Shown: positions 34,170 to 51,176 of the stretch, piece after piece | How positions within the stretch are numbered: the stretch's first letter is position 1 | Layout: each line of letters starts with the position of its first letter | Source of the DNA: Hyalangium minutum | GTDB taxonomy: Bacteria > Myxococcota > Myxococcia > Myxococcales > Myxococcaceae | NCBI RefSeq assembly: GCF_000737315.1 | Contig: NZ_JMCB01000006.1 | Location: 806,001-870,000, forward strand | Length of the DNA: 64,000 nucleotides | Direction of reading: 5' to 3' | The notes under the pieces: model-generated | What the model saw: only the letters and a program-made list of their open reading frames with translations | Database searches by the model: none | What the model was told of the DNA's origin: nothing | Translations under genes and position numbers: made by a program

Positions 34170-37100
34170 TCATTGGTTGGAAGCGTGCTCTGCACGCAGC
34201 CTCAGCGCCTCTGGGTGCTTGGGGCAGGACTTGAGCACTTCTTCCACCAAGGCGAGGCCGCGTTCCAGCTGGGGGGCTGGGACGCGGCCCGCTTTCTTTT
34301 CCGCCAAGGCCCACGCGAGGTGCAGTGAGGCGGACGCCAGGCGCGTGTCGTGCTGCGAGGGATCCAACTGCAGGGCCTGCTCGAAGTCCTTGGCCGCCTC
34401 CGCGAAGTCTTCCACTCGGGACTGAGCCTTTCGCGCCTTCCACTGCAACTGCAGCGCGTGGGTTTCTCCCAGGTAGCCCCAGGCCTCGGAGGCCCGGGGG
34501 TTGTGGCGCAGCGCCTCGCGCAGCTCCCTCTCGGAGCGCTGCAGGGTGGCGCTCGGGTCGCGGCCCCGCGCCAGCTCGTACTCCGCCAGCGTCCGCAGCG
34601 CCCTGCCCAGGTTCGTCCGGGGGAGGAAGTCACCCGGGGATTGCTGGAGCGCCTTCTCGAAGGAGGCCACCGCCTCGCGCACGTTGGGGGCAGGGTCCTC
34701 GCCGCGGGCGCCTCGGTACAGGGCGCGCAGGGCGTGCACCTGGCCCAGGTTGTTGTAGCTGTGGGCCTGCTTGCGGGCCAGCTCCAGGGCTCGCTCGAAG
34801 GCGGCCTGGGCCTCGTCGAGCAGCGGCAGCGGATCCCCTCCGTGCTTCAAGCGCTGCTCGGCCTGGTTGAGCAGCACCGTGCCCACGCCGGACTGCAGGT
34901 GCTGGCTGCGCCCGTTGACGGTGAGCCCCCGCTGATAGATTTCCAGCGCTTGCGCCAACAGGGTCTGCGAATCATCCAAGCACTGGTGCCGGTCCGCCAG
35001 CTGCTCCAGGGCGTCTCCGGCGTTGAAGTACGTGACCCAGTTCTTGGGGTTGAGCTCGATGGCCCGGCGGCTCGCCTCCCAGGATTGCTTGAGGTCCTCT
35101 TCGGGGCGTGAGGGCGTGCCCTGCGTGCCTTCGGGGCTGTCTGCGGGCTGCAAGGCCCGGTTGAGGTAGGCCCGGCCCAGGTTGGTCCACGCATCCGCCA
35201 GCCGCGGATCCAGCCGCGTGGCTTGCTGGAGCGCCTCGATGGCCTGGTTGCGGTGCGCGTCCGCGCGGATGCCGACGTCGTCCTCGCAGGCGCTCCAGAG
35301 CGAGAAGATGGAGCCCAGGATGGTGTGGAATTCGTAGTCACGGTCCGCCGGGGGGATGGCCTGTAGGGCCTGCTCGGCCTGGCGCAGCGACTCGAAGGGG
35401 TCCTGGCCGCGGTTGCGGCGGAAGCGCGCGAGCTGCTGGAAGGTGCGAGCCAGCTCCAGCTGCACCTCCCGGGCGGGGTGCCCCCGCTGGAGCGCCATGC
35501 GCGCCGCTTCCATGGCCGCGGTGAGGTTGGCCTCGGCGTCCTCGAAGCTGTTGTTCTGGCTCTCGGCGAGCCGGCGGTGGAAGCGCGCCTTCAGCATCAA
35601 CGGCATGGGCTCCTCCGGCGCGGCCTGGAGCGCGCGTGTGACGGCCGCCATGCCTCGGGTGAAGGCGGGGAGCACGTCGCCCTCGCTGTAGACTTCGACG
35701 ATCATCGCGTTGGCCTCGAGCTTGGCCAGGGCCTGGTGGACAGCGGGCACGCTCTCGCCAATGGCGGCGGCGGCGGCGTAGGCGCGGCGGCCCGCCTCGA
35801 AGTCGGCGCGAGCGCCCTCGAGGTCTCCCTGCTTCAGGTTCCAGCGCCGCATGGCCCGGGCCTGGAGGATGTCGCCGCGCAGCTGGGGCGCCTCGTAGAA
35901 CCAGGGCAGGCGGTTGCCCATGGCGTCCAGCCGCGCCAGGGCGGCGTCGAAGTCGTCCTCATAGAAAGCAATGAGGGCGGCCACGTATTCGGAAGAGGGC
36001 ACATCCGCGCCCTGGCTGCGGCGCAGCCAGTCCAGCGCTGGGTCCCGGTAGCGGGCCTGGATGTCGCGCCGGCGCTCTTCGATGCTGCGCAGGCGCTCGG
36101 CCTCCAGCAGCTCGTCCTGGTAGCGGCGGCCGAGCACGATCGCGAGCGCGTAGGCCACGCGCGGATCCTTGAAGCCGCTCTGCCACGCAAGCTCCAGGTG
36201 CGTGCGCGCGGCGTCCTCGTCTCCGAGCGCCAGAGCGCCGCGCGCCAGGGCGTAGTGGCCCGGGCCCACTGCCAGCGCTCCGGCCTCGCGGATCTGCCCC
36301 TCCAGCTCGGCCATGCGGTCGCGGATCTTCTGGCGGTCCTCGCGCGTGTCGTGGAGCGGAGACAGGCCCGAGTAGCGGGCCAGGGCTTCAATGTGTTCGA
36401 CTTTCTCGGTGAAGCTGCGGGCGAGCTGCTCGCGGCGGGTGGCCTGCGAGTGGGTGTAGAGGGCCGAGCCCAGCGCGAGCGTGACGGCCAGCAGGGCGGC
36501 GGCGGCCACGCTCACCACGAGCCGGTGCTTGAGCGCCTTCTTGCGCAGCCGGTACCAGAGGCCGGTGGAGCGGGCCTGCACGGGCTCGCCGGCGAGGAAG
36601 CGGTCCAGGTCCTCAATGAGCGCGCGCGCCGAGTCGTAGCGGGCGGAGCGGTCCTTCTCCAGACACTTGAGGACGATGGCCTCGAGGTCCGTGGGGACGT
36701 TGGGGTTCAGGGTGCGCGGAGGGGTGGGCTCCACGGTGGCGATGTTGTTGAGCACCTCGAGCCCATTGGCGCCGGGGATGGCCTGGTGGCCGGTGAGCAG
36801 GAAGTAGAGCGTGGCGCCGAGGCTGTAGACGTCCGCGCGTCGATCCAAGCCCTCCACCTGGCCGCGGGCCTGCTCGGGGGCCATGTAGTGCGGCGTTCCC
36901 ACCGCGGAGCCCGAGCTGATGCTCTCCTTCTCGCTCCAGTCATGTGCGAGACCGAAGTCCATGACGAAGGGCTTGAGGCGCCCATCGTCCGTGCGCTCCA
37001 CGAGGATGTTGGAGGGCTTCAAGTCCCGGTGGATGAGGCCGGCGCGGTGGGCGGCGTGGACGCCCTCGGAGGCCTCGCGCAGCACGAGCACCTGCTGCTC

Positions 37101-37733
37101 CACGGTGAGCTTGAGCTCGCTGGCGAGCCGGTCCAGGGGGAGCCCGTCCACGAACTGCATGGCGATGTAGGGCTTGCCTTGAACCTCGCCCACCTCGTGG
37201 ACCTGGCAGACGCGCTCGTGCTCCACGCGGGCCTGGGCGCGGGCCTCGGACATGAGGCGGCGCACGAGCACCTCGTCATCGCCGCGCACGAACTTGAGGG
37301 CGACGTTGCGGCGCAGGCTCCGGTCATACGCGAGGAAGACGCGGCCCATGCCGCCCTGGCCGAGGAAGCGCACGCCCTCGTAGCGCTCCCAGCCGGGGAC
37401 GGGGAACTGCGGGTCGGCCTTGTCGCGATCCGCCAGCGTGAGGGCGGGGCCCAGCGTCTCGGCGCCGCCGGTGCCCGCCGCGCGGGGGACAAAGGTCTCG
37501 TCTACGTCTGCCTTGCGCAGCTCGGCGAGGGACTCATCCGAGAGGAGGCCGCGCGCCTGGAGGAGGGCGAGGGGGCCCTTGCCGGAGCGGAGGGACTCCT
37601 CGCGCAGCGGCTCCACCTCCTCGCGCGTGATGAGGCCCTCGGCCAGGGCCATGCGCAGCTCGGCCTCAAGGTCATCGTGCATCAGGGCGGGCTCCGAGGG
37701 TGGGCTCGGGGAGGGGGGCGCGAGAGGGGACAC
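34170..37733 (-). CDS. Membrane Ser/Thr kinase with large TPR-repeat C-terminal region
   Basis: LGQGGMGRV, VALK, IHRDLKPSN, MDFG, GTPHYMAPE, DVYSLG; TM HRLVVSVAAAALLAVTLALGS; many TPR-like helices; start may be 37682. Confidence 0.92.
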   Translation of the reverse strand: MSPLAPPSPSPPSEPALMHDDLEAELRMALAEGLITREEVEPLREESLRSGKGPLALLQARGLLSDESLAELRKADVDETFVPRAAGTGGAETLGPALTLADRDKADPQFPVPGWERYEGVRFLGQGGMGRVFLAYDRSLRRNVALKFVRGDDEVLVRRLMSEARAQARVEHERVCQVHEVGEVQGKPYIAMQFVDGLPLDRLASELKLTVEQQVLVLREASEGVHAAHRAGLIHRDLKPSNILVERTDDGRLKPFVMDFGLAHDWSEKESISSGSAVGTPHYMAPEQARGQVEGLDRRADVYSLGATLYFLLTGHQAIPGANGLEVLNNIATVEPTPPRTLNPNVPTDLEAIVLKCLEKDRSARYDSARALIEDLDRFLAGEPVQARSTGLWYRLRKKALKHRLVVSVAAAALLAVTLALGSALYTHSQATRREQLARSFTEKVEHIEALARYSGLSPLHDTREDRQKIRDRMAELEGQIREAGALAVGPGHYALARGALALGDEDAARTHLELAWQSGFKDPRVAYALAIVLGRRYQDELLEAERLRSIEERRRDIQARYRDPALDWLRRSQGADVPSSEYVAALIAFYEDDFDAALARLDAMGNRLPWFYEAPQLRGDILQARAMRRWNLKQGDLEGARADFEAGRRAYAAAAAIGESVPAVHQALAKLEANAMIVEVYSEGDVLPAFTRGMAAVTRALQAAPEEPMPLMLKARFHRRLAESQNNSFEDAEANLTAAMEAARMALQRGHPAREVQLELARTFQQLARFRRNRGQDPFESLRQAEQALQAIPPADRDYEFHTILGSIFSLWSACEDDVGIRADAHRNQAIEALQQATRLDPRLADAWTNLGRAYLNRALQPADSPEGTQGTPSRPEEDLKQSWEASRRAIELNPKNWVTYFNAGDALEQLADRHQCLDDSQTLLAQALEIYQRGLTVNGRSQHLQSGVGTVLLNQAEQRLKHGGDPLPLLDEAQAAFERALELARKQAHSYNNLGQVHALRALYRGARGEDPAPNVREAVASFEKALQQSPGDFLPRTNLGRALRTLAEYELARGRDPSATLQRSERELREALRHNPRASEAWGYLGETHALQLQWKARKAQSRVEDFAEAAKDFEQALQLDPSQHDTRLASASLHLAWALAEKKAGRVPAPQLERGLALVEEVLKSCPKHPEALRLRAEHASNQ

Positions 37734-38884: not shown

Positions 38885-39009
38885 GATCGGCTCGTTCCCC
38901 CCCAAACCCAATCCATATCGGAGCCTGGACCCTGGCGCACGGGCTTGGCGGGTCCCCTGCGCACGGGCCGTGCCTCCGGCTGGACCCCCGGGGAGCGTAG
39001 ACTGCGCGC

Positions 39010-40272
39010 ATGTCCAAGACCGACACGCGCTCCGCCGACCCGTGCCCGCACCTGGGCCGCGAGTACAACCACTTCGCCGGTCCCCACCTCCAGAACCCAG
39101 CACCGTTCTTCGAGCGGCTCCGGAAGGAGGCGCCCGTCACCTTCAACCCCATGCTGGGCATGTGGCTGATCAGCCGCTACGACGACATCGCCGCGGTGCT
39201 GAACAACGCCTCCGCCTACTCCTCGGCGAGCGCGGTCGCCTCCACGGAGAAGCTGACACCCGAGGCCCAGGCCATCCTCGGGCCCGGCCCCATCATCCAC
39301 GACAGCCCACTCAACATGGATCCGCCGGCCCACACCCGGCTCAAGCGCCTGCTGCAGCGCGGGTTCACGCCCGCGAAGATCGCCCGCCTGGAGCCGCGCA
39401 TCCGGCAGTTCGCCAACGCGCTCATCGACAGCTTCATCCACGAGGGCCGGGTCAACCTCGTGGAGCGCTTCGCCTCGCCGCTGCCGGTGCAGGTCATCCT
39501 GAGCATGGTGGGCGTGCCGCAGGAGGACATGGAGCGAGTGAAGAACTGGTCCACCGCGCTGTTCGGGCTCGTGTTCGCCCAGATTCCTCCCGAGCTGCAG
39601 CCCACCCTGGCGCGCGGCGTGGTCGAGTACCGGCACTACTGCACCCAGCTCATCGAACAGCGGCGGCGCCAGCCCCAGGAGGACCTCACGAGCGACCTCA
39701 TCGCCGCCGAGCCCGATGGTGAGGCGCTGACGATGGACGAGCTCATCTCGCTCATCGGCGGCTCGCTGCTCGCGGCAGGCCATGAGACGACGACGGCGCA
39801 GATTGCGTTGTCCGTGAAGAACCTGCTGGAGCAGCCGGAGCGCTGGCAGAGGCTGCGCGAGGACCGCTCGCTCATCCCCAAGGCCGTGGAGGAGTGCATG
39901 AGGCTGGAGGGCGTGGCACCCGGCATGACGCGCACGGCCCTCCAGGACGTGGTGGTGGGCGGGGTGTCCTTGCCCAAGGGCTCGCGCCTGCTGCTGCTCT
40001 ACGGCTCCGCCAACCACGACGAGGCGCACTACCCGGATCCGGAGCGCTTCGACCTGGAGCGCGAGGGCCCGCAGCACCTCACCTTCGGCCGCGGCATCCA
40101 CTTCTGTCTGGGCGCGCAGCTGGCCCGGCTGGAGCTTCGCGTCGCGCTCGAGCAGCTCCTGGAGCGCATCCCCGAGCTGCGCCTCGTCCCGGGCCAGGAC
40201 TCCGGGTACCAGCAGGACCTGCTGATCCTCCGAGCCATCCGCCAGCTCCAGGTGGAGTGGCCCGTCCGCTGA
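39010..40272 (+). CDS. Cytochrome P450
   Basis: MDPPAHTRLK, AGHETT, EECMR, FGRGIHFCLGAQLARLE. Confidence 0.96.
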   Translation: MSKTDTRSADPCPHLGREYNHFAGPHLQNPAPFFERLRKEAPVTFNPMLGMWLISRYDDIAAVLNNASAYSSASAVASTEKLTPEAQAILGPGPIIHDSPLNMDPPAHTRLKRLLQRGFTPAKIARLEPRIRQFANALIDSFIHEGRVNLVERFASPLPVQVILSMVGVPQEDMERVKNWSTALFGLVFAQIPPELQPTLARGVVEYRHYCTQLIEQRRRQPQEDLTSDLIAAEPDGEALTMDELISLIGGSLLAAGHETTTAQIALSVKNLLEQPERWQRLREDRSLIPKAVEECMRLEGVAPGMTRTALQDVVVGGVSLPKGSRLLLLYGSANHDEAHYPDPERFDLEREGPQHLTFGRGIHFCLGAQLARLELRVALEQLLERIPELRLVPGQDSGYQQDLLILRAIRQLQVEWPVR

Positions 40273-40287
40273 GCCCTCGCCCGAGGT

Positions 40288-40929
40288 TCAGGCGCCGTAC
40301 GAGGGGAGGAGCAGATCCCGCCGCCACTCGCTGAGCCGGTAGTACTCTTCCTCGGGCCACGTGCCCAGGTGCACCATGACGATGCCTCCGTCCGAGGCCG
40401 TCAGGCTCGCATCCACGTGGACGCTCGGCTCCACCACGGTGTCCGGCGGATCCACGTAGCCCTCCTGGTGCTCCAGCTCCAGGGAGGTGAGCCGCGCGCC
40501 TGGGAACTCGGCGAGGCAGGCCCCGAGGAACTCGTGCGGGGCACGGTACGGCGGCGGCGCGCCGATGTGCATGCCCCACGGATCCATCAGGCGCAGCTGC
40601 GTGGTGGTGCGCACCCAGGCCAGCGTGGCTCGCTCGTGCATGGCGCCCACGTGATCCACCGCCTGGGCATGGCGCATGCCGTCCTGGCCGCGCATGTGCA
40701 GGGTGTAGTGAGGGCGATCTCCCGGCCACCACCAGCTCAGCTCGAAGCGATCGCCCGGCCCTGACTCGTCGGGAGGAAAGAGCGCCTCCAGGTGCAGCAG
40801 GAATTGCTCCTCGGAGAGGCTCAGCCGGTGCTCGCGCAGGGAGTGCCAGTCCGTGCGGGCGAAATGAACCACCCGTGCGCGGTAGGCACGCGGGTCCAGA
40901 CTCAGAAGGTCTACCCAGTCGTCACTCAT
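40288..40929 (-). CDS. Hypothetical protein
   Basis: AGGAG upstream; 213-aa ORF with plausible composition filling the gap between P450 and SDR. Confidence 0.6.
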   Translation of the reverse strand: MSDDWVDLLSLDPRAYRARVVHFARTDWHSLREHRLSLSEEQFLLHLEALFPPDESGPGDRFELSWWWPGDRPHYTLHMRGQDGMRHAQAVDHVGAMHERATLAWVRTTTQLRLMDPWGMHIGAPPPYRAPHEFLGACLAEFPGARLTSLELEHQEGYVDPPDTVVEPSVHVDASLTASDGGIVMVHLGTWPEEEYYRLSEWRRDLLLPSYGA

Positions 40930-41160
40930 CGGGCATCCCCAGCCTACTCCTTCAGCCTGAAGAAGTGTTCGCCTGAAGAAGGGCGCCTCGGAAACGGCCC
41001 CTGACAAAGGCTGACCAGCAGGGGGGGACGAAAGGCGAAGGAAGGCACGTCCTGGAGGCTCGTCGAGGAGGCGGGCAGCCGAGCCGTCGGTGAGGGCCAC
41101 ACTGTTTCCGGCTGCGCTCGCGCCCCATCCTGGTGTGTGGACGAGCCAGGTGGAGGCGGA

Positions 41161-42156
41161 ATGGGGCGCGAGGAGCTGCGGGGCAAGGTCGCCATCGTCA
41201 CGGGGGCTTCCAGCGGTGTGGGCTGGCAGAGCGCGGTGCGCTTGGCGGAGCAGGGCGTGCGGCTGTGCGTCACCGCCCGGCGTCTCGAGGCGCTCGAGAA
41301 CCTTCAGGCCCAGGTGCTGCGACAGGGCGGCGAGTGCCTGGTGGCGCCGGGAGACGTGACGGTGCAGCAGGACGTGGACCGCGTGGTGCGCGCCTGCATC
41401 GAGTTCTACGGCCGGGTGGATCTGCTGGTGAACGTGGCGGCGGTGCAGTCGTACGGGTTCTTCGATGACCTGCCGTGGGAGCACCTGGAGCGCACCTTTG
41501 ACGTGAATTGCTTCGGGTACATGCGCTTCGCGCGTGCGGTGCTGCCGCACTTCCGAGCCCAGCGCAGCGGCCACGTCCTCAATGTCCAGTCCATGCTCTC
41601 CAAGGGCGGCGCGCCGCTGCTGGCCTCGTACGCGGCGTCCAAGCACGCCACGCTCGGCTGGGCGGAGTGCCTGGAGCTGGAGCTGCGCGGCACGGGCATC
41701 CACGTCTCCAATGTGCTGGTGCCCTCGGTGGCCACGCCGATGTTCGATCACGCGCCCACCCAGTTCCACCTGGCGCCGATGCCGGTGCCGCCCACCTATG
41801 AGCCAGACGTGGCGGCGCGCGCGGTGGTGAGGTGCGCCCGGCGGCCGGGGCGGACCGTGGTGCCCGTGTTCCTCCAGGGCAGGCTCATCCTCTGGATGGA
41901 CCGGTGGGTGCCGCGGGTGGGCAAGTGGCTGCTAGGAAACTTCGGCGTGCGGATGCAGATGCGCGAGAAGCCCGTGGAGCGGACCGAGGGCAACCTCTTC
42001 CACCCGGTGCGGCAGGGCGTGGGGCCTCACGGCAGCGTGCCGCCCACGCCTCGGTGGAAGCGCTTCACGGCCACCGCGGGCCTTGTGGCGCTGGCCGGTG
42101 GAGCGCTCAGCGGCGTGGCGCTCGGGGCCCGAGGGCTGGCGCGGGCCGTGCGGTGA
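41161..42156 (+). CDS. SDR-family oxidoreductase
   Basis: TGASSGVG, YAASK, C-terminal hydrophobic tail. Confidence 0.92.
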   Translation: MGREELRGKVAIVTGASSGVGWQSAVRLAEQGVRLCVTARRLEALENLQAQVLRQGGECLVAPGDVTVQQDVDRVVRACIEFYGRVDLLVNVAAVQSYGFFDDLPWEHLERTFDVNCFGYMRFARAVLPHFRAQRSGHVLNVQSMLSKGGAPLLASYAASKHATLGWAECLELELRGTGIHVSNVLVPSVATPMFDHAPTQFHLAPMPVPPTYEPDVAARAVVRCARRPGRTVVPVFLQGRLILWMDRWVPRVGKWLLGNFGVRMQMREKPVERTEGNLFHPVRQGVGPHGSVPPTPRWKRFTATAGLVALAGGALSGVALGARGLARAVR

Positions 42157-42271
42157 GAACCTGAGAGGTCGCAGGGGGGCGGAGTGCTCAGGAGGGTTGA
42201 GTCTCCTCCGCAGATGCGCGAGAAGTCTGCTGTCGGGGCGTGACCCCTGAACGAGCAGGACCTCGGCCTCC

Positions 42272-43558
42272 ATGACGCTCCGGGAAACCATCGAGTATGC
42301 ACGCGGGCTGTTCGTGAAGCTCTGGGCCGAGCTCTGGAAGGACCATCCCCGGTTCCAGGAACTGGAGCGGGAGTTTCGCCTCAATAAGGCGATCGGGACC
42401 GAAGCGCAGGTCCTCAAACTGCTCGACGAGGGGAAGAAACCGCCGGAGGAGTGGAACGGCCTGGTGCGGCTGCGTGCGCTGGATGAGTTCCTGGCCGAGA
42501 ACTCGGGGAGCCGGGCCACAGGAGTGGACACCCTGCTCTCGACGCTCGTGCAGTTGGAGGACGGAGAGCGCTACCACCTCTACCGGCGCCCTCAGGGGAT
42601 GAGGAAGGGCCACCTCGAAGGGAAGGTGGGGCACCTCCGCAACTGGGCGAGGCATCACTGGGTCATCCCCGCGAACTTGAGCCGCTATCACGTCGAGATC
42701 CGGAAGCCAGGCGATTACCTCTCCCGGAAGCTCGCCGACCTCTACAAGCGGGGAGAGCGCCTCCGGGTTGCCATCTGCCACTTCGAGGACGGAGTGGGGC
42801 TATCGCGGGTGAAACCGCATCCTCCGTCGTGGCGAGTGGAGAGCCTCACGGATCCGGAGGCCCGCTGGCAGACCCTGAAAGGCTTCCTGGAACAGGCGCG
42901 ATTCGCAGGAGCCCACGTGTTGGTGCTCCCGGAGCTCACGGTGACACCCGCGCTGCGGGAACGGGTCCAGCAGTGGCTGGAGGAGCACTTCGGCGAGCAT
43001 GAGATGCTGATGGTGCTCCCTGGAAGCTTTCATGAGGCGGACAGTGAGGACCCGGACAAGGTCTTCAACCGGGCGGAGCTGTTGGACGCCTATGGGCACC
43101 CCGTCCTAGAGCATCTCAAGCTCCTGCCTTTCGGCGGGCTTGGCGAACAGGGAGCCGAGGACATCCACACCGGGAAGTGGATCCGGCTGATGGGACTGCC
43201 GCTCGGCATGCTGGCGATGCCCATCTGCCTGGACTTCTGCGAAGCAGACGGGCCGATGCCTGAAGTCTGGAAGAACATCGGTCCCGAGTGGGTGCTGGTC
43301 CCCGCCTTGGGGGATGCTACCAGCCTCAGGGCGCATGCCCGGGCGGCCGCACAGCTCTACACCACGCGCGGCAGCGTCACCGTGCTGGCCAACCAGCCCA
43401 AGACTGAAGGGGAGAAGGCTCCTGGCTTCGTCTACCAGGGTCAGAAGCGCGACAGTGCGGAGAAGGCGGATGAGCCTGTGCCCTGCTTCCAGGTGGTGGA
43501 AGTGGACATCCGCTTGGATTTCCAGGGGAACAAGCAGGCACCGGGAGCGGTAAACTAG
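42272..43558 (+). CDS. Nitrilase/carbon-nitrogen hydrolase superfamily protein with unknown N-terminal domain
   Basis: Putative E-K-C triad in VLVLPEL, HLKLLPF and PICLDF; FNRAEL motif. Confidence 0.75.
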   Translation: MTLRETIEYARGLFVKLWAELWKDHPRFQELEREFRLNKAIGTEAQVLKLLDEGKKPPEEWNGLVRLRALDEFLAENSGSRATGVDTLLSTLVQLEDGERYHLYRRPQGMRKGHLEGKVGHLRNWARHHWVIPANLSRYHVEIRKPGDYLSRKLADLYKRGERLRVAICHFEDGVGLSRVKPHPPSWRVESLTDPEARWQTLKGFLEQARFAGAHVLVLPELTVTPALRERVQQWLEEHFGEHEMLMVLPGSFHEADSEDPDKVFNRAELLDAYGHPVLEHLKLLPFGGLGEQGAEDIHTGKWIRLMGLPLGMLAMPICLDFCEADGPMPEVWKNIGPEWVLVPALGDATSLRAHARAAAQLYTTRGSVTVLANQPKTEGEKAPGFVYQGQKRDSAEKADEPVPCFQVVEVDIRLDFQGNKQAPGAVN

Positions 43559-43590
43559 AGTAAACCCCTGGAGTTCACTAAGGTTTACTC
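43558..43590. promoter_or_regulatory. Palindromic operator candidate
   Basis: GAGTAAACC-N15-GGTTTACTC abutting ATG 43591; extra GTAAAC at 43550. Confidence 0.6.
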
Positions 43591-44241
43591 ATGCCGCTTG
43601 AGCTGGAGACTGTCGCTCCCGAGGACTTGGCGTTCCATGCCTCGCTGGCCGAGATGTTGGAGGCCATCCGCAGCCGCGAGCAGTGGAGCGAGCGCATGGC
43701 CGAAGTCCTGGAGTACGCCTACTGCGAGCGGCTCCTCAAGCTGGTGCGGACGGGAGCACCGCTAGAGCAGCTCCGCGAACTGAACGAGCACTTGGCTCAT
43801 GTCGTCCATCCCCGACGGCGCGCCCAGCTCGACAGCCTGGGCAAGCCCTACTTCGCGCGCTGGTCCATGCTGCGCGCGCTATTGGAGATGCGCATCGAGT
43901 CGCTGCGCAGTGAAGTCCCCTCCCAGGTGCTCAACCGGAAGCACGTCCGGGAAATCCTGGAGCGCGTCCAGCGAGAGGGGGAGGTGACGCAGCAGTTCAT
44001 CGGCGAGACGTTCGCGCTCGAGAAAGCCAACCTGTCCCGGATCCTGGCGCTCATGGAGGCCAACGAGCTCATCGACAAGGTGGCTCGGGGCAATGGCAAC
44101 ACCATCGTCCTGGGAGTCAGGGGGCGGGAGTTGATGCCACCGAAGGAGACTGCCGTGCCACGGGCCCCCGCGCCCGTGAAACACGCGCGGCGTGGAGCCT
44201 CGTACCTCAACCCCGAAGCGGCCGATGGCACCTTCCACTAG
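43591..44241 (+). CDS. Winged-helix (MarR-like) DNA-binding protein with helical N-terminal domain
   Basis: VREILERVQREGEVTQQFIGETFALEKANLSRILALMEANELIDKVARG...LGVRG. Confidence 0.75.
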   Translation: MPLELETVAPEDLAFHASLAEMLEAIRSREQWSERMAEVLEYAYCERLLKLVRTGAPLEQLRELNEHLAHVVHPRRRAQLDSLGKPYFARWSMLRALLEMRIESLRSEVPSQVLNRKHVREILERVQREGEVTQQFIGETFALEKANLSRILALMEANELIDKVARGNGNTIVLGVRGRELMPPKETAVPRAPAPVKHARRGASYLNPEAADGTFH

Positions 44242-44245
44242 GACC

Positions 44246-47200
44246 ATGACGGCACACGTCTCGACCTTCTACAGCTTCAAGGGGGGTGTGGGGCGGACCC
44301 TGTTGCTGGCCAACGTGGGCGTGGCCCTCGCGCGCGGCCATCAGCGAGTCCTCTTGTGGGACCTGGATCTGGAAGCGCCAGGGATGCACCACATCGAAGG
44401 ACTGAAGCCGCGCAAGCCCGTGGCCCAGGGTTTCCTGCGGTGGCTGATGGAGTGGCAGCAGGCGGAAGCCGCCGCCGCCGCCCCCGTCCCCCTCGAGGGG
44501 CACCTGTTGGAGTCCTTTCTGGCCCTGCCGTACGCAGTGCCAGAGGTCCCCGGCTTGTTCGTCCTGCCCGCGTATGGGGAGCGCGAGAACTTCACGGGCC
44601 TCTACCAGCAGATCGACTGGCACAAGTTCACCGTGGAGTCTCCCGAGCGAGGCGTCGCGCTCTTTCAGCAGCTCCTGGACGGGCTCACGGGGCGGCTGGG
44701 GTATGGCCACATCCTGCTGGACTCACGGACGGGCATCACCGATCTGGGAGGCCTGCTCACGGCGGTGCTGCCGCATGCGACGGTGCTGGTGGGCAACTAC
44801 TCGGCCCAGAACACGGCGGGGCTGCTGAACGTCTATCGCGCGCTGCAGCCGGCGGTGGCCGGGAAGATGCCCGAGCGGAGATATGGGAAGTTGCGGCGTC
44901 TGCTGGTGGCCTCGCCGGTGCCGCTCCTGGAGACGAAGCAGGCGCTGGAGGCGCGCCGTGCCGTCTGGAACAGCCAGTTCGAGACGCCACCGGACGAGAC
45001 CCGTGTGGAGATCCCCTTCGTGGAGCGGTTGCTCTTTGGAGAGGAGCTGCTGGTCGAGACGGCTCCCCAATCGCCCACGGCCCGGGCCTATCAGGAGGTG
45101 GCCGCGAGGCTCAGCGAACTCCGAGAGGAGCGCATCCAGGAGGAGGAGGCCGCCAACCTGGGGGATCAGCTCTACCCGGAGCGCGCGCGGATGCGGCGGA
45201 TGAGCGGGCTGGAGGGATTCTTCGACGCGGGCCCCTCCTTCGAGCAGCGGGTGGAGAAGCTGCTCCGGCTCCTGGGCTACACGGTGACTCGGCTTGAGCC
45301 GCAGGACAGTGGAGCGGATCTCCAGGCCCAGCGTAAGAGCGGCCTCCTGCAGGAGCGGTACCGGGTCGTCTGCAAGGAGATACGGCGGCCCCTCTCGCTG
45401 ATTGAGGCGCAATCGCTCGTGAAGCTGCTCCAGCCCACGGGCGAGCGATCCTCCGAGAATGCACTGATGGTGGTGGCGTCCGGCTTCTCCACCGCGGCCA
45501 TCGAGTTCCTGCAGGAAGCGCGGGTGCTGGCCTTCACCTTGAAGGACCTGGAGCGGGAGCTCTTCGACTTCAAGCCGTACCTGTCGCGGCTTCGCAGGAG
45601 CTACGAGGAGAGCACGCTGGCGCGCACCTACGTCCCTCCAAAGCTGAAGTCCCTGGAGGTGCAGGGACGGGAAGCGGAGGCGCTGGCACGAGGCAAGGCG
45701 TGGGCTCGCGGGGAGAGTGCCCGGCTGTGGCTGGTGGTGGGAGAGGCCGGGACGGGGAAGACGAGCTTCATCCAACGGCTCGCCTATGAGCTGGCGGCTG
45801 CCGCCGAGAAGGATTCTGACAGCCCCGTTCCTGTCACCATCCCCCTCAAGGACTTTGGGGGAGCCGTCTCCCTGGAGGGAATGCTGCAGGAACACATGGC
45901 CGCACGCGTGGGCTGGCGGGGAGATCCCGCGGTCCTGCTTCACCTGCTCTCCGTGGGGAGAATCGTTCTGCTCCTGGATGGGCTGGACGAGCTGGGTGTC
46001 ACGGAGCCCTCGCTCCTGGAGGAGCAGCTCCGCCAGCTCGCGAGGCCGACCGCCTCCGAGCCCGAGGAGCCGCGGGGTAACCGCGTTCTCATCACGAGTC
46101 GAGCGCAGCACTTCCGGGACGAGCGCAGCGCGGGGCTCCCGGCGCGCGTCTCCCCGTTGAACACTGCGCTTGGGTCCGTGGCTCTGGCGCTCGGCGCGGA
46201 GGTGGATGAGCTGGCCGGGTGGGATCGGCAACAACTGCGAGAGTTCCTCGTCCGATCCCTCGGACAGGAGAAGGCGGCACAATGGGATGCACTGCTTGCC
46301 CGGATCGAGGCACGGCCTGAGCTGACCTCCCGGCCGATGCTGGTGGAGATGCTTCTGCCCGTGGCCTCGGAGCTCTCTTCTTACAAGGGCGAGTTGTCTC
46401 TCGGGGCTTTGTTTCAGCTCTTCATCCGCCACGTGCTGAAGAGCCAGGGCCCGCTTGCACGGATGCGGCTAGGACGCTTCTTAGAGCGGTTGGCGCACGA
46501 GGCGCGGAGGGACCCGCGAGGCCGGATCCACATCACCAAGATGATCCGCCTGATAGGTGTGCCGCTCAGGAGTACGGCGCGTCAGGAGGCCTCCAGGCTG
46601 GAGCCGGAGCTGAGCGCGCTGCCCTTCCTGACGCGGGAGCTGGGCGAGTACTACCAGTTCAAGTTCAAGCTCTTCGAGGAGTTCTTCTATGCGCGGCATC
46701 TGTGGAACGCGGCGCACCGACAGAGGCTGGCGCATGCGCTGGATGCGCCCCCGCTGACGTCCGACGGAGCCGTCTTCCTGGTGGATCTCGCCGCCAGCGA
46801 GGACGTGGAGGTGCTTCGATCGGGTGTCAGGCAGGTGCTGTCCGGTAGCTATTCGCCTCGGATCAGTGAGAACGCGCTCCGCCTCGCGTACGAGTGGAGC
46901 TGTGGCACGGCGGGAGGCGCCAATCAAAGCAGCCAGCAAGAGATGCGCTGGTTCATGCCCCCGCAGGCGCACCTGGAAGGAGCGGACCTCCGCGGAGCCC
47001 GGTTGGCTTGGGCGTGGCTCGAAGGGGCCCGGCTCGTGGAGACTCGCCTGGACGGTGCGGACCTGACGGCGGCGAACCTTCGCGGAGTCGAGGGCCACAG
47101 GCTTCAAGCGCGTGTCAGCATCCTGGACGGAGCGGACTTGGGTCGCGCTCAGCTCCGGGAGGCAGACTTCTCGGGCAGTACGGCGTTCCACCACGCTCCG

Positions 47201-49342
47201 CTCCTCGAGGGGACGGATCTGCGCGGGGCCCGGCTCAAGGGCACAGCGTGGAGGATGCCCGCGCTGAGTGGGGAGCTCCCTCCCAGTAGAGAGCTGAGGC
47301 TGGCACGCTGGGGCAGCCGTCACGTGGACGGCGGGAGCGAGGTGCTCCTCGAGCCCGCCTTGCCAGGCTCGGTGAGTGAGCTGGCGGTCTCTTCGGATGG
47401 AACCCTGTTCGTGACCTGCGGAGGCCAGCACCCTGTCTTGTGGGACCTGGCCTCGGGGCGCCCATTGGTCACGTTCGTGGGCCACGCGGCGTGCGTGAAC
47501 AGTGTCGTGTTCGCTCCCAGCGGGAAGCTCCTCGCCTCGGCTTCGGATGATGGGACAGTGGGTGTGTGGGATGTCTCCACGGGAGCGCTTCTGCGGAGCC
47601 TTCGAGGCCATCAAGCCCCGCTATGGCAGGTCGCGTTCTCACCCGATGGGGGCCTCCTCGCATCTTGTTCGGTCGATGGGACAGCGCGTCTGTGGAATCC
47701 CAACACGGGAGAGCCTGTGTCGGTCATCTCCGCTCACGCTGAGAAAGTGTGGAGTGTGGCCTTCTCACCGGACGGTGAGCTGCTCGCGACAGGTTCGGAG
47801 GACCAGTCGATCCGCATCTGGCGGGTGGCGAGTGGAGCTCCAGTTCGTACGTTGGAGGGGCACACGAAGGCGGTCCGATCGCTTGTGTTCAACCCACGGG
47901 TCCCTCATCAGCTCATCAGCGGGTCCGGGGACTCGACGGTGAAGATCTGGGACCTGCAGGAAGACACGCCCCCCAGAGAGCTGCTGGCCGAGGATGCCAA
48001 TGTGATGCGCCTCGCGTGTAACGGGGTGAACGTGGCGGCCATCACCCTCCAGAGCGAGGTCCTCGTATGGGACGCGGCCTCGGGGACTCAGGTGGGCAGC
48101 GTGTATGGAGGGGGATTGGGGTTTGGGCTGGCGTTCGTGCCGGGAGAAGAAGGGCAGGTCGCTGTCGCCGCGAATCAAGGCATCTGGCTCGAGCGCCCAG
48201 CGGCTCCAGAGTCACGGGTGCAGCGGGTTCGCGGAGCGGCGGGCGTCTGCGTGAGCTTCCTGCCGGGAGGGCGGGTGGTGCTGGGGGGAGAAGCGGGAGG
48301 GGCGAGGGTCTGGGATACACGCACCGGGGCATCCCCCATGATGTTGCCCACGGCACAAGACGTGGTGGCGTCGCTCGCCGTGTCTCCCGATGCAACGGAG
48401 CTCTACACCTTCTCGACGGACGGAGTCATCCGGCTCTGGGACATCGAGGCGGGCAGACTGCTGAAGGTGGTGGAGAAGCTCGAGGATGTGGGCCGCCTCG
48501 CCCTCTCGCCTGACGGCGGGCGCTTGGCGCGGACAGACGGGCGTTCAGTCAGAATCTGGGACGTGCGCGCACCTCGCCCCAAAGCTCGCTTCGAGCTCAG
48601 TGGACTGGAGAGTTCCATCTGGGGGATCGCCTTCTCTCCGGACGGTCAGATCCTTGCTACGGCTTCCGCGGACAAGCTCGTGAGGCTCTGGGACGGCCAC
48701 ACCGGCACGGCGATCCGCTCCTTGGAGGGGCACACGGAGGACGTGTACGCCTTGGCTTTCTCTCCCAAGGCTTCGCTGCTGGCCAGTGTCGGCGGTGAAA
48801 AGACGGTCCGGGTATGGGACGTCGAGAAGGGAGAGGCTGCCTTCACCTTGGAAGGCCATGAAGATGGCCCCGTCAGCGCTGTCGCGTTCTCGCCCGATGG
48901 GAACCTGCTCATGAGCGGTGCATGGGACTTCACGGTCCGGGTCTGGAGCGTCCGGGAGCGAAAACAAGTGGCCGTGCTCGAAGGTCACGAGGGGGTTCTT
49001 GTCGGCGTGGCCTTCTCACCGGAAGGCGATCGCGTGGTGACGATCACCATGGGAGGGAGTGCGCGGCTCTGGGACACCCGGACATGGCGGCTCCTGGCCA
49101 CCTTCGTTTGGCTGGAGCCGGGCTGGGCCACGCTTGCGGGCTCCTATGCCCTCACTTCTCCAGAGGCGGACACCGGCAGGATCGCGGTCCGGGCCGGTGC
49201 GCTGCTGGCGCCACTGACGCTCTTCAAGGACCAATGCCTCCGTCCGGAGCTTGTCCAGGCTGTCTTGGCGGGGCAGCCGGTCGAACCCCTGAAGCTCGAG
49301 CTTGGCATGGCGAGCCGGGGACTTCACCCGCGCGATCCCTAA
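44246..49342 (+). CDS. NLR-like multidomain protein: ParA/MinD-like ATPase + Mrr-like REase + NACHT + pentapeptide repeats + about 14 WD40
   Basis: FYSFKGGVGRT and LLDSRTG; FEQRVEKLL..GADL..VVCK; GEAGTGKTS, LLLDGLDE, VLITSR, FEEFFYA; A(D/N)LRGA repeats; GH..WD repeats. Confidence 0.9.
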   Translation: MTAHVSTFYSFKGGVGRTLLLANVGVALARGHQRVLLWDLDLEAPGMHHIEGLKPRKPVAQGFLRWLMEWQQAEAAAAAPVPLEGHLLESFLALPYAVPEVPGLFVLPAYGERENFTGLYQQIDWHKFTVESPERGVALFQQLLDGLTGRLGYGHILLDSRTGITDLGGLLTAVLPHATVLVGNYSAQNTAGLLNVYRALQPAVAGKMPERRYGKLRRLLVASPVPLLETKQALEARRAVWNSQFETPPDETRVEIPFVERLLFGEELLVETAPQSPTARAYQEVAARLSELREERIQEEEAANLGDQLYPERARMRRMSGLEGFFDAGPSFEQRVEKLLRLLGYTVTRLEPQDSGADLQAQRKSGLLQERYRVVCKEIRRPLSLIEAQSLVKLLQPTGERSSENALMVVASGFSTAAIEFLQEARVLAFTLKDLERELFDFKPYLSRLRRSYEESTLARTYVPPKLKSLEVQGREAEALARGKAWARGESARLWLVVGEAGTGKTSFIQRLAYELAAAAEKDSDSPVPVTIPLKDFGGAVSLEGMLQEHMAARVGWRGDPAVLLHLLSVGRIVLLLDGLDELGVTEPSLLEEQLRQLARPTASEPEEPRGNRVLITSRAQHFRDERSAGLPARVSPLNTALGSVALALGAEVDELAGWDRQQLREFLVRSLGQEKAAQWDALLARIEARPELTSRPMLVEMLLPVASELSSYKGELSLGALFQLFIRHVLKSQGPLARMRLGRFLERLAHEARRDPRGRIHITKMIRLIGVPLRSTARQEASRLEPELSALPFLTRELGEYYQFKFKLFEEFFYARHLWNAAHRQRLAHALDAPPLTSDGAVFLVDLAASEDVEVLRSGVRQVLSGSYSPRISENALRLAYEWSCGTAGGANQSSQQEMRWFMPPQAHLEGADLRGARLAWAWLEGARLVETRLDGADLTAANLRGVEGHRLQARVSILDGADLGRAQLREADFSGSTAFHHAPLLEGTDLRGARLKGTAWRMPALSGELPPSRELRLARWGSRHVDGGSEVLLEPALPGSVSELAVSSDGTLFVTCGGQHPVLWDLASGRPLVTFVGHAACVNSVVFAPSGKLLASASDDGTVGVWDVSTGALLRSLRGHQAPLWQVAFSPDGGLLASCSVDGTARLWNPNTGEPVSVISAHAEKVWSVAFSPDGELLATGSEDQSIRIWRVASGAPVRTLEGHTKAVRSLVFNPRVPHQLISGSGDSTVKIWDLQEDTPPRELLAEDANVMRLACNGVNVAAITLQSEVLVWDAASGTQVGSVYGGGLGFGLAFVPGEEGQVAVAANQGIWLERPAAPESRVQRVRGAAGVCVSFLPGGRVVLGGEAGGARVWDTRTGASPMMLPTAQDVVASLAVSPDATELYTFSTDGVIRLWDIEAGRLLKVVEKLEDVGRLALSPDGGRLARTDGRSVRIWDVRAPRPKARFELSGLESSIWGIAFSPDGQILATASADKLVRLWDGHTGTAIRSLEGHTEDVYALAFSPKASLLASVGGEKTVRVWDVEKGEAAFTLEGHEDGPVSAVAFSPDGNLLMSGAWDFTVRVWSVRERKQVAVLEGHEGVLVGVAFSPEGDRVVTITMGGSARLWDTRTWRLLATFVWLEPGWATLAGSYALTSPEADTGRIAVRAGALLAPLTLFKDQCLRPELVQAVLAGQPVEPLKLELGMASRGLHPRDP

Positions 49343-49382
49343 GCGAGGAGCTGGCGTTACCCCCAGCTCGGCCGGGACGTGC

Positions 49383-51176
49383 TCAGCCCCGGAGGCGCTC
49401 GTGTCCCGCGCTGCAGCCCGTGCGCAAGAAGTTCTGCGCGGTGGTGATCAGCGCGAGGTGGCTGAAGGCCTGAGGGAAGTTGCCCACCAGCCGGTGGGAC
49501 TCCACGTCGTACTCTTCGGACAGCAGCCCCACGTCGTTGCACAGCCCCAGCAACCGCTCGAAGAGCTCGCAGGCCTCCTGGTGGCGGCCGAGCAGCGCCT
49601 GGTTGTTCGCCAGCCAGAACGAGCACGCCAGGAACACGCCCTCGCCCGCGGGGAATCCGTCCTTCGTGCGGTCCGAGTCGTAGCGGTACACGAGGCCCTC
49701 GTGGAGCAGCTCGCGCTCGATGGCCTCCACCGTGCCTCGCACGCGGGGATCCTCCGGGGGCAAGAAGCCCACCAGCGGGATCATCAACAGGCTCGCGTCC
49801 AGCTCCCGCGAGCCATAGGCCTGCACGAAGGTGTTGAGCTTCGGATCAAAGCCCTTCTCGCACACCTGCGCGTGGATGCGGGAGCGCAGGGCGCGCCACT
49901 CGTCCAGCGGAGCCTCCAGGTGGTAGTCCTCGGCGCTCCTGAGCGCCTGGTCCACCGCCACCCATGCCATGATCTTCGAGTGCGTGAACTGCTGCCGTCC
50001 GCCCCGGATCTCCCAGATCCCCTCGTCTGGCAGCTCCCAGGACCGCTCGATGAAGCGCAGCAGGTGCCGCTGCAGATCCCACACCTCCTGCTCCGAGGGC
50101 AGACCGGCAACGCGGGCCTGGTGGAGGCAGGCCATCACCTCGCCGAAGATATCGAGCTGGAGCTGCTTCACCGCGTCGTTGCCGATGCGGACCGGATGGG
50201 AGTTCGCATAGCCCGGCAGCCAGGGCAGCACGGACTCCGGGAAGCGGCGCTCGCCCGCGACGCCGTACATGATCTGCAGCTCCTCGGGCTCTCCGGCCAC
50301 GGCGCGCAGCAGCCAGTCGCGCCAGGAGCGGGCCTCCTCGGTGTAGCCGGCCCGCAGCAGCGTCACCAGCGTGAGCGTGGCGTCGCGCAGCCAGCAATAG
50401 CGGTAGTCCCAGTTGCGCACGCCGCCCAGGTTCTCGGGGAGCGAGGTGGTGGGCGCGGCGACGATGCCCCCGGTCGGCGAGTACGTGAGGGCCTTCAAGG
50501 TGATGAGCGAGCGCAGCACCTGCTCGCGCCAGGGCCCCTGGTAGGTGCAGCGGTCCGACCACTCGCGCCACCAGGAGCACGTTCCCTCCAGGGCGGTGAA
50601 GGCCTCCACGGAGCGGGGCTGGCGCTGGTGGGAGGGGAACCAGGTGAGGATGATGGGGATCTGCTCGTGCTCGGCCACGGTGAAGTCCGAGAAGACGTGG
50701 CCGTTCTCCACGTGCATGGGCATGCGGGTGCGCAGCAGCGTGGCATCCGGGCCGGCCTTGGCGGAGACGCAGCAGAAGGTGGAGCGGATCCACGGGCTGC
50801 GATTGCCGTAGCCGAAGCGGGGCGAGGCCTCCATGTGGACGGGGACCCGGCCGCTCATGCCGCGGACGATGCGGACGATGTCCGGCGCCTCGTTGCGCGG
50901 CGGCATGAAGTCGATGAGGCGCACGGTGCCCTCGGCCGTCTCGAAGTCCGTCTCGAGCACGAGGGTGCCGGGCACGTAGCGGCGCCGCACCGAGCGCACG
51001 GGGATGGAGGGGGCGATGCACCAGCGGCCATGGCGCTCGTCGCCCAGCAGCGCCGCGAAGCAGGCATCCGAGTCGAAGCGGGGCCAGCACAGCCAGTCGA
51101 TGGAGCCATTCGTCCCGACGAGTGCCGCGCTGTAGGTGTCGCCAATCAGGGCATAGGCTTCGAGGGGCAGCGCCAT
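49383..51176 (-). CDS. Glycoside hydrolase family 15
   Basis: IDWLCWPRFDS, AAPTTSLPE, RNWDYRYCWLRD, GLLSEEYD, GNFPQAFSH. Confidence 0.94.
   Translation of the reverse strand: MALPLEAYALIGDTYSAALVGTNGSIDWLCWPRFDSDACFAALLGDERHGRWCIAPSIPVRSVRRRYVPGTLVLETDFETAEGTVRLIDFMPPRNEAPDIVRIVRGMSGRVPVHMEASPRFGYGNRSPWIRSTFCCVSAKAGPDATLLRTRMPMHVENGHVFSDFTVAEHEQIPIILTWFPSHQRQPRSVEAFTALEGTCSWWREWSDRCTYQGPWREQVLRSLITLKALTYSPTGGIVAAPTTSLPENLGGVRNWDYRYCWLRDATLTLVTLLRAGYTEEARSWRDWLLRAVAGEPEELQIMYGVAGERRFPESVLPWLPGYANSHPVRIGNDAVKQLQLDIFGEVMACLHQARVAGLPSEQEVWDLQRHLLRFIERSWELPDEGIWEIRGGRQQFTHSKIMAWVAVDQALRSAEDYHLEAPLDEWRALRSRIHAQVCEKGFDPKLNTFVQAYGSRELDASLLMIPLVGFLPPEDPRVRGTVEAIERELLHEGLVYRYDSDRTKDGFPAGEGVFLACSFWLANNQALLGRHQEACELFERLLGLCNDVGLLSEEYDVESHRLVGNFPQAFSHLALITTAQNFLRTGCSAGHERLRG

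Follow-up and report, generated by a model that had tools for sequence, protein, structure and literature searches.

The 64,000-nucleotide stretch of the Hyalangium minutum genome analysed here (contig NZ_JMCB01000006.1, positions 806,001 to 870,000; hereafter the window) carries three intact, co-directional genes on the + strand, which form a conserved, self-contained and portable module and encode a nitrilase-fold enzyme (open reading frame 1, ORF1), a winged helix-turn-helix (wHTH) protein (ORF2) and an NLR-like protein (ORF3). The trio is probably an undescribed variant of the bacterial NLR-type conflict systems, with immunity or cell death as its presumed role, and we put the probability that it constitutes a self-contained, horizontally mobile, three-component NLR-type conflict system (serving immunity or regulated cell death) at roughly one in two. 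The divergent enzyme ORF1 occupies positions 42272-43558 (428 aa), ORF2 positions 43591-44241 (216 aa) and ORF3, which combines a ParA-like KGGVGR domain with restriction endonuclease-like (REase), NACHT, pentapeptide and WD40 regions, positions 44246-49342 (1698 aa; an alternative start lies at 44192). Alignment with homologues places the start of ORF3 at the ATG at 44246 (MTAHVSTFYSFKGGVGR), so that the intergenic gaps amount to 32 and 4 nucleotides. An earlier reading made from the sequence only (the sequence-only reading) had likewise described three tightly packed co-directional genes with these gaps, and its predicted domain content of all three genes is borne out by Pfam and NCBIfam searches, alignments and AlphaFold2/Foldseek analysis.

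Recurrence of the three genes in a fixed order is the principal evidence for a module. A pattern scan covering one genome per species, seeded with an ORF1 alignment, yielded 25 loci on which the window domains were placed by tblastn. At 15 of these (L002-L011, L013, L014, L016, L020 and L023) a carbon-nitrogen hydrolase (CN-hydrolase) gene is followed by a wHTH gene and then by a KGGVGR-REase-NACHT gene, with pentapeptide and WD40 repeats wherever the contig is long enough. The hosts of these loci are Archangium, Pyxidicoccus, Kofleriaceae, Desulfobacteraceae, Desulfocapsa, Gammaproteobacteria, Acidobacteriota, Brocadiaceae and a bin labelled Rickettsiales, and overall about 27 further loci with the same order are found in Myxococcota, Desulfobacterota, Gammaproteobacteria, Acidobacteriota, Planctomycetota and others, spanning at least six phyla. 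In a reciprocal scan of metagenomes, seeded with a diverse alignment of the KGGVGR domain and followed by local HMM searches, an ORF2-like gene lies directly upstream in all 11 of the closest KGGVGR loci (at least 36% identity), and an ORF1-like gene is also present upstream in 10 of them, the remaining locus (L026) being cut at the contig end. Such ORF1/ORF2-like partners occur at only 3 of the 69 distant KGGVGR loci. When all ORFs from the 25 genomic loci were clustered against one another, no fourth recurrent gene emerged. The flanks differ from lineage to lineage and are mostly housekeeping genes, such as those for citrate synthase, argininosuccinate synthase, CTP synthase and an aminoacyl-tRNA synthetase, with two integrases among 103 flanking ORFs of 14 loci. 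The sequence-only reading had proposed co-occurrence of the three genes as a check and vertically conserved core as an outcome that would speak against it; the trio recurs in order across phyla and in unrelated contexts, and with flanks that differ by lineage the locus is not vertical core.

Over shorter evolutionary distances, the position of the trio in the window is common only to a sister Hyalangium metagenome-assembled genome (MAG; L001), and both ORF1 and ORF2 have their closest relatives in Hyalangium and Archangium. Compared with L001, DNA identity is 86-88% in the flanks and 79% in the ORF1 region, and protein identity is 93% for the radical-SAM neighbour and 74% for ORF1. The P450 and SDR (short-chain dehydrogenase/reductase) segments of the window (38903-40310 and 40955-42111) are absent from the otherwise collinear L001 contig, and the neighbourhood immediately upstream of the trio is indel-prone. 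On these comparisons the module passes vertically between close relatives, has a horizontally scattered distribution at greater distances and changes more rapidly than the DNA around it.

ORF1 narrowly misses the curated cut-off of the Pfam CN_hydrolase family PF00795 (21.0 bits against 23.2; E 2e-4), and several of its homologues carry precomputed PF00795 matches. Despite this sub-threshold score, there is strong structural support for ORF1 as a nitrilase-superfamily enzyme with a predicted alpha-beta-beta-alpha sandwich. The AlphaFold2 (AF2) model has a predicted local distance difference test score (pLDDT) of 87 and a predicted template modelling score (pTM) of 0.88, and its top Foldseek matches are the Nit2 omega-amidases of yeast and mouse and a Nesterenkonia amidase (E 7e-11, probability 1.0), with beta-ureidopropionase also among the structural matches; a profile search of the PDB likewise retrieves Nit2 (E 2e-4). 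The nitrilase-superfamily fold spans residues ~162-415 and contains the catalytic tetrad E221/K283/E296/C319, the residues of which are invariant in an alignment of 18 database homologues and remain so in 34 of 34 sequences once distant homologues are added. RefSeq labels distant ORF1 homologues hypothetical proteins. It is preceded by a family-specific N-terminal extension of ~160 aa (helical over residues 1-85, followed by a small beta subdomain) for which no relatives were detectable.

The N-terminal 320 residues of ORF3 (44246-45205, +) form a ParA/MinD-like P-loop domain, which matches the model for KGGVGR-variant AAA proteins (NF047398) at 118.6 bits (cut-off 90), as well as CbiA/ParA models and MinD structures in the PDB (E 8e-5). 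Within its P-loop (K12-G-G-V-G-R17-T) the signature lysine is kept and the P-loop lysine is replaced by arginine, a departure from the deviant Walker A consensus KGGxxGK[ST], and the Walker A' residues D39/D41 and the Walker B residue D159 are retained. The motif KGGVGR[TS] is invariant in all 14 system homologues aligned and present in 133 of 150 family representatives. Because the Lys-to-Arg replacement is fixed and the family is predicted to be inactive (Kaur et al., 2020), the domain seems more suited to the role of an adaptor or switch than to that of a partition ATPase; the conservation of the remainder of the nucleotide-binding site in turn suggests that the domain is not dead and has kept a role in binding or switching.

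The next region (45233-45553, +) has an Mrr-type PD-(D/E)xK REase fold (Mrr_cat, 42.6 bits against a cut-off of 21, E 7.7e-11), within which a match to NA-iREase1 is also found (E 6e-4). In the window its catalytic triad is degenerate, reading E333, D358 and V375-C-K377. The D...E-x-K triad is intact in 42 of 59 relatives and degenerate in the other 17, among them the window and relatives such as L002, L003, L014 and L020, where the rest of the system is intact; other Myxococcota members have lost it too. The window REase is probably catalytically dead and limited to a structural or DNA-binding role; since the catalytic glutamate is lost (D358/V375/K377), it is unlikely to be the executioner, and the suggestion of the sequence-only reading that the N-terminal domains and/or the amidase execute the response is corrected here as regards the REase. 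The universally maintained enzyme of the system is instead ORF1, because its tetrad is never lost (34/34) and the REase triad is lost in 17/59.

The NACHT NTPase module of ORF3 (45656-46945, +; E 1.4e-9, 38.4 bits, cut-off 26.7) comprises Walker A and Walker B motifs followed by helical and winged-helix regions. Walker A (GEAGTGKT, K505) is kept in 12 of 13 aligned homologues, the exception being L010, in which the NACHT region is absent from the extracted ORF and the tblastn match is split, and Walker B (LLLDGLDE with D578, D581 and E582; LLLDAFDE in homologues) agrees with the D[GAS]hDE signature. At L010:13201-14187 the NACHT matches lie in two frames, and ~80 residues around Walker B are missing, possibly through a frameshift, a pseudogene or an assembly error. 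A pentapeptide-repeat linker (46964-47248, +; Pfam Pentapeptide, E 7e-18) leads to WD40 repeats with a short C-terminal tail (47369-49342, +; E 6e-101, at least 8 stretches in Pfam), which make up two beta-propeller regions of ~14 blades. Identity to homologues is highest in the KGGVGR domain (44-68%) and falls via the NACHT module to its lowest values in the WD40 region (29-43%), a gradient that would suit a protein signalling through a conserved end and sensing through a variable one, with the WD40 repeats as the presumed sensor. On its motifs and repeats ORF3 can be taken as a bona fide NACHT protein with sensor-type repeats, for which oligomerisation and anti-phage activity are predicted. 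Several close ORF3 homologues, P0183, P0184 and P0033 (~1,010 aa) and P0185 (993 aa, Hyalangium sp.), stop after the pentapeptide region, and Hyalangium has a separate pentapeptide/WD40 protein; the sensor may have split off as a fourth gene in these cases, or the short forms may reflect a frameshift or a gene-calling artefact.

ORF2 consists of a conserved helical N-domain (residues 1-110), an ArsR/MarR-like winged helix (residues 116-181) and a C-terminal tail (residues 191-216), which is disordered in an AF2 model with a pLDDT of 83. The protein matches the Pfam family DUF7343 at 29.1 bits (cut-off 27.6) and MarR_2 below threshold, and Foldseek aligns CzrA, HlyU and MarR with its wHTH part only (E ~0.01, reported probability 1.0); no PDB structure matched the N-domain, all matches lying within the wHTH. 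The tail contains the motif [R/E]RGxSY[L/M] (R200-L206), which is kept across phyla, from Myxococcota to Desulfobacterota.

Directly before ORF2 lies an operator-like element (43550-43589, GTAAAC-TAGA-GTAAAC-N7-GTTCAC-TAAG-GTTTAC) of two direct and two inverted half-sites with a 10-nt period, which covers the last codons of ORF1 together with its stop and leaves 2 nt to the ATG of ORF2. The hexamers GTAAAC/GTTTAC occur four times in the entire 64-kb window, and three of these occurrences fall within the element. As a strict RTRAAY motif undercounted metagenomic loci, an unbiased four-half-site score was used instead, in which the element reaches 17/18 (shuffle maximum 14); its geometry is significant relative to shuffles (p <= 0.013) at 10 of 25 loci, from four phyla, where ~0.3 would be expected by chance. 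Half-sites before the ORF2 homologues of Archangium and Pyxidicoccus read GTAAAC, those of a Desulfobacteraceae MAG ATGAAT/GTTCAT, those of a gammaproteobacterial MAG ATGAAC/GTTCAC and those of several metagenomic loci CTAAA/TTTAG, the geometry being kept while the sequence co-varies. No clustered half-sites were seen upstream of ORF1 in 8 loci, an Rfam scan of 41000-50500 returned no family match, and a scan of 41900-49600 for sigma-70 promoters and terminators gave nothing above chance. Because of its periodicity, and because the half-sites vary with lineage at constant geometry, a putative protein-binding operator for ORF2 is favoured over an RNA hairpin. The sequence-only reading had foreseen an operator-bound winged-helix regulator, and the element found at this position agrees with it, binding being predicted.

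From these components a mechanism can be proposed in which the trigger, the protein-protein contacts, the enzymatic substrate and the biological role are all conjectural. The fast-evolving pentapeptide/WD40 region of ORF3 would bind a trigger, upon which the NACHT module would oligomerise, by analogy with characterised bacterial and eukaryotic NLRs. Oligomerisation would cluster the KGGVGR domains, which are placed where related NACHT proteins have TIR, caspase, SIR2 or PNPase effectors; lacking any obvious toxic chemistry, the KGGVGR domain would most likely serve as an adaptor or as a nucleotide-dependent dimerisation switch that engages ORF1 and ORF2. ORF2 would bind the four-half-site element before its own start and so autoregulate ORF2-ORF3, as the conservation of the element suggests. 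More speculatively, the tail motif of ORF2 may dock onto the ParA-like domain in the manner of ParB/ParG partners on ParA, so that ORF2 would leave the operator and ORF1 would be released and/or assembled into an active oligomer. The nitrilase-fold amidase ORF1 would then be the enzymatic effector, hydrolysing an essential amide-bearing target, and the Mrr-type nuclease may provide a second effector in most family members.

A number of observations weigh against a role in conflict. When PADLOC was applied to the 42 other ORFs of the window, only kinase models were matched (PD-T4-6, mad6 and PglW), by three Ser/Thr kinases, one of them at 34170-37733 (-), which are probably generic myxobacterial eukaryotic-like Ser/Thr kinases and not defence genes. 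PADLOC and Pfam searches of the 103 flanking ORFs from 14 loci gave, besides a Ser/Thr kinase, only isolated single-ORF PADLOC matches (e.g. PDC-S01 and MkoA), and neither ORF1 nor ORF2 has a match in PADLOC-DB v2.0.0. ORF1 has its nearest structural relatives among metabolic omega-amidases in the Foldseek comparison, finds no match in phage genomes, and on plasmids has no close match, only distant homologues in two-gene variants on Bradyrhizobium megaplasmids. An adaptor domain common to ORF1 and ORF2 was ruled out by hhalign (probability 0.4%), so that homotypic recruitment of the EAD type is inapplicable, and the four-half-site element is statistically detectable at just 10 of 25 loci. STAND/WD40 proteins, moreover, also serve developmental signalling in bacteria with complex lifestyles, which are the main hosts here.

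Placement in a defence island, which the sequence-only reading had proposed to look for, is accordingly not seen in the window or at the 14 related loci, and guilt by association with defence genes was rejected as a line of support, the flanks yielding kinase models and isolated matches. The PADLOC search proposed there gave no known system with all components. The sole match of the trio is that of the ORF3 N-domain to PDC-M28B (E 4e-19), which is partial, covering profile positions 129-410 of 438. Since a defence island, phage carriage and close plasmid carriage are all missing and ORF1 is akin to metabolic amidases, a developmental or a toxin-antitoxin-like role is plausible, and both have to be set against the reading as a conflict system.

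As a signal-transduction or developmental module, the STAND protein would sense an endogenous or environmental cue via its WD40 repeats and modulate the wHTH protein, which would control an amidase that processes a metabolite or signal. Housekeeping and secondary-metabolism neighbours (P450, radical SAM, SDR and GH15), the lack of a defence-island signal in the window and at 14 loci, the structural proximity of ORF1 to metabolic Nit2 omega-amidases and aliphatic amidases, the largely Myxococcota and Desulfobacterota hosts with their expanded STAND/WD40 signalling repertoires, and the retention of the locus at the same position within Hyalangium are all in keeping with such a role. However, the flanks are wholly different in each lineage and offer no conserved metabolic partner genes, the module is patchily distributed over at least six phyla and diverges faster than the neighbouring genes, and both the chassis and the KGGVGR domain are otherwise tied to TIR, caspase, SIR2 and FGE-sulfatase conflict architectures. 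We consider a developmental module rather unlikely on this balance.

The wider family of the KGGVGR domain bears on the second alternative. When 1.84 billion representative proteins were scanned in full with HMMER, 6,923 relatives emerged at E <= 1e-3, 3,695 at E <= 1e-10 and 80 at E <= 1e-30; the 80 best are mostly ~1,700-aa proteins of ORF3 architecture, and most of the others are KGGVGR-TPR proteins of ~600 aa, alongside KGGVGR-NACHT-FGE-sulfatase and tandem forms. The distant KGGVGR-TPR genes (~570-630 aa; L037-L105, e.g. L037:962-3607) carry conserved upstream partners of their own. At 38 loci the gene upstream of KGGVGR-TPR encodes an MqsA-family antitoxin of ~190 aa (TIGR03830, 72 bits, above cut-off), which combines a zinc ribbon with an XRE-type HTH, and at 22 loci a ~125-aa protein without a family match, falling into two clusters of 15 and 7, precedes the MqsA-family gene. 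These loci look like a separate, apparently undescribed tripartite toxin-antitoxin-like cassette. The CN-hydrolase and wHTH pair itself occurs with alternative third genes, namely KGGVGR-TPR (L012) and an EEP-family nuclease/phosphatase (L015), and, at L018 and on Bradyrhizobium plasmids, with no third gene at all. At L015:11209-12653 a wHTH-like region is followed by or fused to the EEP domain, a possible alternative effector arrangement. The variant at L106:8382-12468 (Bradyrhizobium guangxiense plasmid p53363), with a CN-hydrolase-like gene and a long HTH gene, adjoins both a HigB/XRE pair and a pair encoding an ATP-binding protein and an S8 peptidase. A TIR fusion was also encountered, at L107:5001-7205 on the Sinorhizobium chiapasense plasmid pSchITTGS70c; it encodes 734 aa with an N-terminal KGGVGR-type domain, is annotated as TIR domain-containing and sits among other TIR genes and a UvrD-helicase gene.

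The trio may also be read as a tripartite toxin-antitoxin-like addiction or stress module, in which ORF1 would be the toxin and ORF2 the antitoxin and autorepressor, with ORF3 controlling antitoxin availability and no dedicated sensing of invaders; this overlaps with the conflict system in mechanism and differs from it in biological role. Its gene order parallels the sister layout of small ORF, MqsA-family antitoxin and KGGVGR-TPR gene, an operator-like palindrome is found at the HTH gene, the loci are patchily distributed, look mobile and lie outside defence islands, and CN-hydrolase and HTH variants lack the ATPase, one of them beside HigB/XRE on a Bradyrhizobium plasmid. A 1700-aa NACHT-WD40 sensor is, however, costly for a simple addiction module, the operator lies before ORF2 rather than ORF1, unlike the classical autoregulation of a whole operon, and ORF2 is well folded apart from its tail, unlike many labile antitoxins; an addiction module is on these grounds judged unlikely. 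The last alternative, that the nuclease is the real effector and the CN-hydrolase an accessory, for instance an enzyme that acts on the sensor or produces or degrades a small-molecule signal, draws on an Mrr_cat score above the curated cut-off, on the triad being intact in 42/59 family representatives and on the Mrr-like REase effector predicted for bNACHT25 (Kibby et al., bioRxiv 10.1101/2022.07.19.500537), but is improbable given that the triad is lost in 17/59, including the window and its closest relatives L002, L003, L014 and L020, where ORF1, ORF2 and the remainder of ORF3 are intact, that the supplementary table of the same source annotates the clade 11 REase as inactive, with other effectors N-terminal to it, and that the ORF1 tetrad is never lost.

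The conflict system set out above may belong to something larger. The recurrent arrangements suggest a theme in which an enzyme or toxin-like gene is followed by genes for an HTH DNA binder and for a sensor-fused KGGVGR ATPase. The trio could represent the NLR branch of a much larger, undescribed class in which a ParA-derived Arg-P-loop domain, clustered by the sensor, captures the tail of the DNA-bound HTH protein, derepresses the locus and frees an otherwise silent enzyme or assembles it into an active oligomer, the sensor fusions of the KGGVGR ATPase in such a class being TPR, NACHT-WD40, NACHT-FGS or TIR. In the trio this enzyme would be the nitrilase-fold amidase, with an essential metabolite or protein bearing an amide as its target. 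This extension is tentative and, on balance, doubtful. If true, it would mean that the logic of partition-type ATPases was co-opted for switching in immune signalling, and that a second, independent nitrilase-based effector mechanism exists besides DRT1.

Within the window, the trio is located between an SDR gene (41137-42156) upstream and a GH15 glycosidase gene (49383-51176, -) downstream, as the sequence-only reading had it, with P450, radical-SAM enzyme and Ser/Thr kinase-TPR genes further upstream. The lower bias in GC content at third codon positions (GC3) noted there by eye holds in part: GC3 is 0.81-0.86 in the trio, computed to be below that of both immediate flanking genes (0.91 and 0.95), but the difference is modest and unexceptional, as further window genes reach values as low as 0.81-0.84. 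Overall GC content is ~69% in the window, and regionally 0.66-0.67 versus about 0.70. Elsewhere in the window two ~454-aa ORFs with 80% mutual identity (226-1590 and 25941-27308, +) occupy its two lowest-GC stretches (0.647). In a tblastn search of plasmids their only match was a partial one, at the C-terminus, to Ralstonia DNA that is unannotated, and they may represent a duplicated gene or a mobile element.

Those bacterial NLR-related proteins that have been tested (bNACHT, Avs) reportedly act as single polypeptides to which the effector is fused. If a NACHT protein is always accompanied by two separate partners, it would represent bacterial NLR signalling via separately encoded components, an organisation nearer to that of eukaryotic pathways. 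The ParA-like KGGVGR domain, which is widespread (about 3,700 clusters at E <= 1e-10), would gain a testable role, and nitrilase-fold effectors a second context. The conserved DNA element and the tail motif of ORF2 provide immediate experimental handles. Were the module to prove developmental or toxin-antitoxin-like, it would still constitute new regulatory logic in myxobacteria and Desulfobacterota.

In comparison with known systems, the novelty claimed by the sequence-only reading stands for the combination and not for its parts. The triad of CN-hydrolase, wHTH and KGGVGR-NACHT proteins is not described in PADLOC-DB v2.0.0, NCBIfam or full-text literature searches, which also returned no paper naming KGGVGR, whereas the REase-NACHT-pentapeptide-WD40 chassis is published (clade 11), the KGGVGR family is catalogued and nitrilase effectors are known (DRT1/UG5). 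The relation to PADLOC PDC-M28 is confined to the ParA-like domain of ORF3, which matches PDC-M28B; neither ORF1 nor ORF2 matches PDC-M28A, ORF3 is four times as long as the profile, and the trio is not a PDC-M28 member. Organisationally, the trio resembles ParA-ParB/ParG cassettes in placing a ParA/MinD-fold protein next to a small dimeric DNA-binding protein with a flexible tail and a nearby palindrome, an analogy of layout; in contrast to par operons, its gene order is reversed, the P-loop lysine is missing and the genes are chromosomal, with no replicon of their own. As in mqsRA, a toxin-like gene stands ahead of an HTH gene, although ORF1 is unrelated to MqsR.

The KGGVGR domain corresponds to the MinD/ParA-like domains, predicted to be inactive, that occupy effector positions in vWA-MoxR and AP-ATPase conflict systems (Kaur et al., 2020; PMC7159879), and in agreement with the sequence-only reading such ATPases are reported from conflict systems; the PADLOC candidate PDC-M28B matches the domain as well. 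ORF3 matches the model of this domain (NF047398) above cut-off and has the fixed P-loop Lys-to-Arg replacement and a fusion to STAND/repeat sensors. The published contexts are the vWA-MoxR (VMAP) ternary and AP-ATPase peptide-processing systems, that of the trio, a NACHT-WD40 chassis with CN-hydrolase and wHTH partners, is not described there, and no nitrilase or CN-hydrolase partner is among the seven 'hydrolase' mentions checked in PMC7159879. For ORF1 the closest functional precedent is the DRT1/UG5 reverse-transcriptase defence, in which a nitrilase domain is the effector and oligomeric state gates activity (PMC13275509, PMC13436386); the requirement of nitrilase-superfamily enzymes for oligomerisation has been demonstrated for the DRT1 effector (PMC13275509). 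The two systems have an intact-tetrad nitrilase as presumed effector, a likeness at the level of the superfamily. In contrast to DRT1/UG5, the trio contains no reverse transcriptase, its nitrilase is partnered with an NLR-type sensor, and ORF1 is encoded on its own, with an N-terminal extension of ~160 aa that is unique to it.

The closest overall counterpart is clade 11 of the bacterial NACHT proteins, listed by Kibby et al. (bioRxiv 10.1101/2022.07.19.500537, supplementary table) with an (NA-)iREase, a NACHT module, pentapeptide repeats and a beta-propeller, and enriched there in Myxococcota, Actinobacteria and Cyanobacteria. ORF3 has the same domain order with a variable module at the extreme N-terminus, a placement made by architecture alone. 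The N-terminal modules given in the table for clade 11 are caspase, PNPase, SIR2, TIR, trypsin and calcineurin-like domains. A Methanosarcina NACHT protein carries a fused CN_hydrolase domain. As a word-index protein search with REase-NACHT retrieved only 10 close relatives, the case for effector swapping in the N-terminal slot rests on this published table. One Polyangium protein has an unannotated N-terminus of ~360 aa before the iREase, the same layout as in ORF3. Among the table entries considered, neither a tested clade 11 member nor a MinD, CbiA or AAA_31 entry was found, and the KGGVGR domain in the N-terminal slot is the feature of ORF3. Compared with clade 11 as tabulated, the two partner genes of the trio are essentially obligatory. 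The chassis and the single domains are known from these systems, and it is the obligate three-gene combination, its operator and the coupling through the KGGVGR domain that appear to be undescribed.

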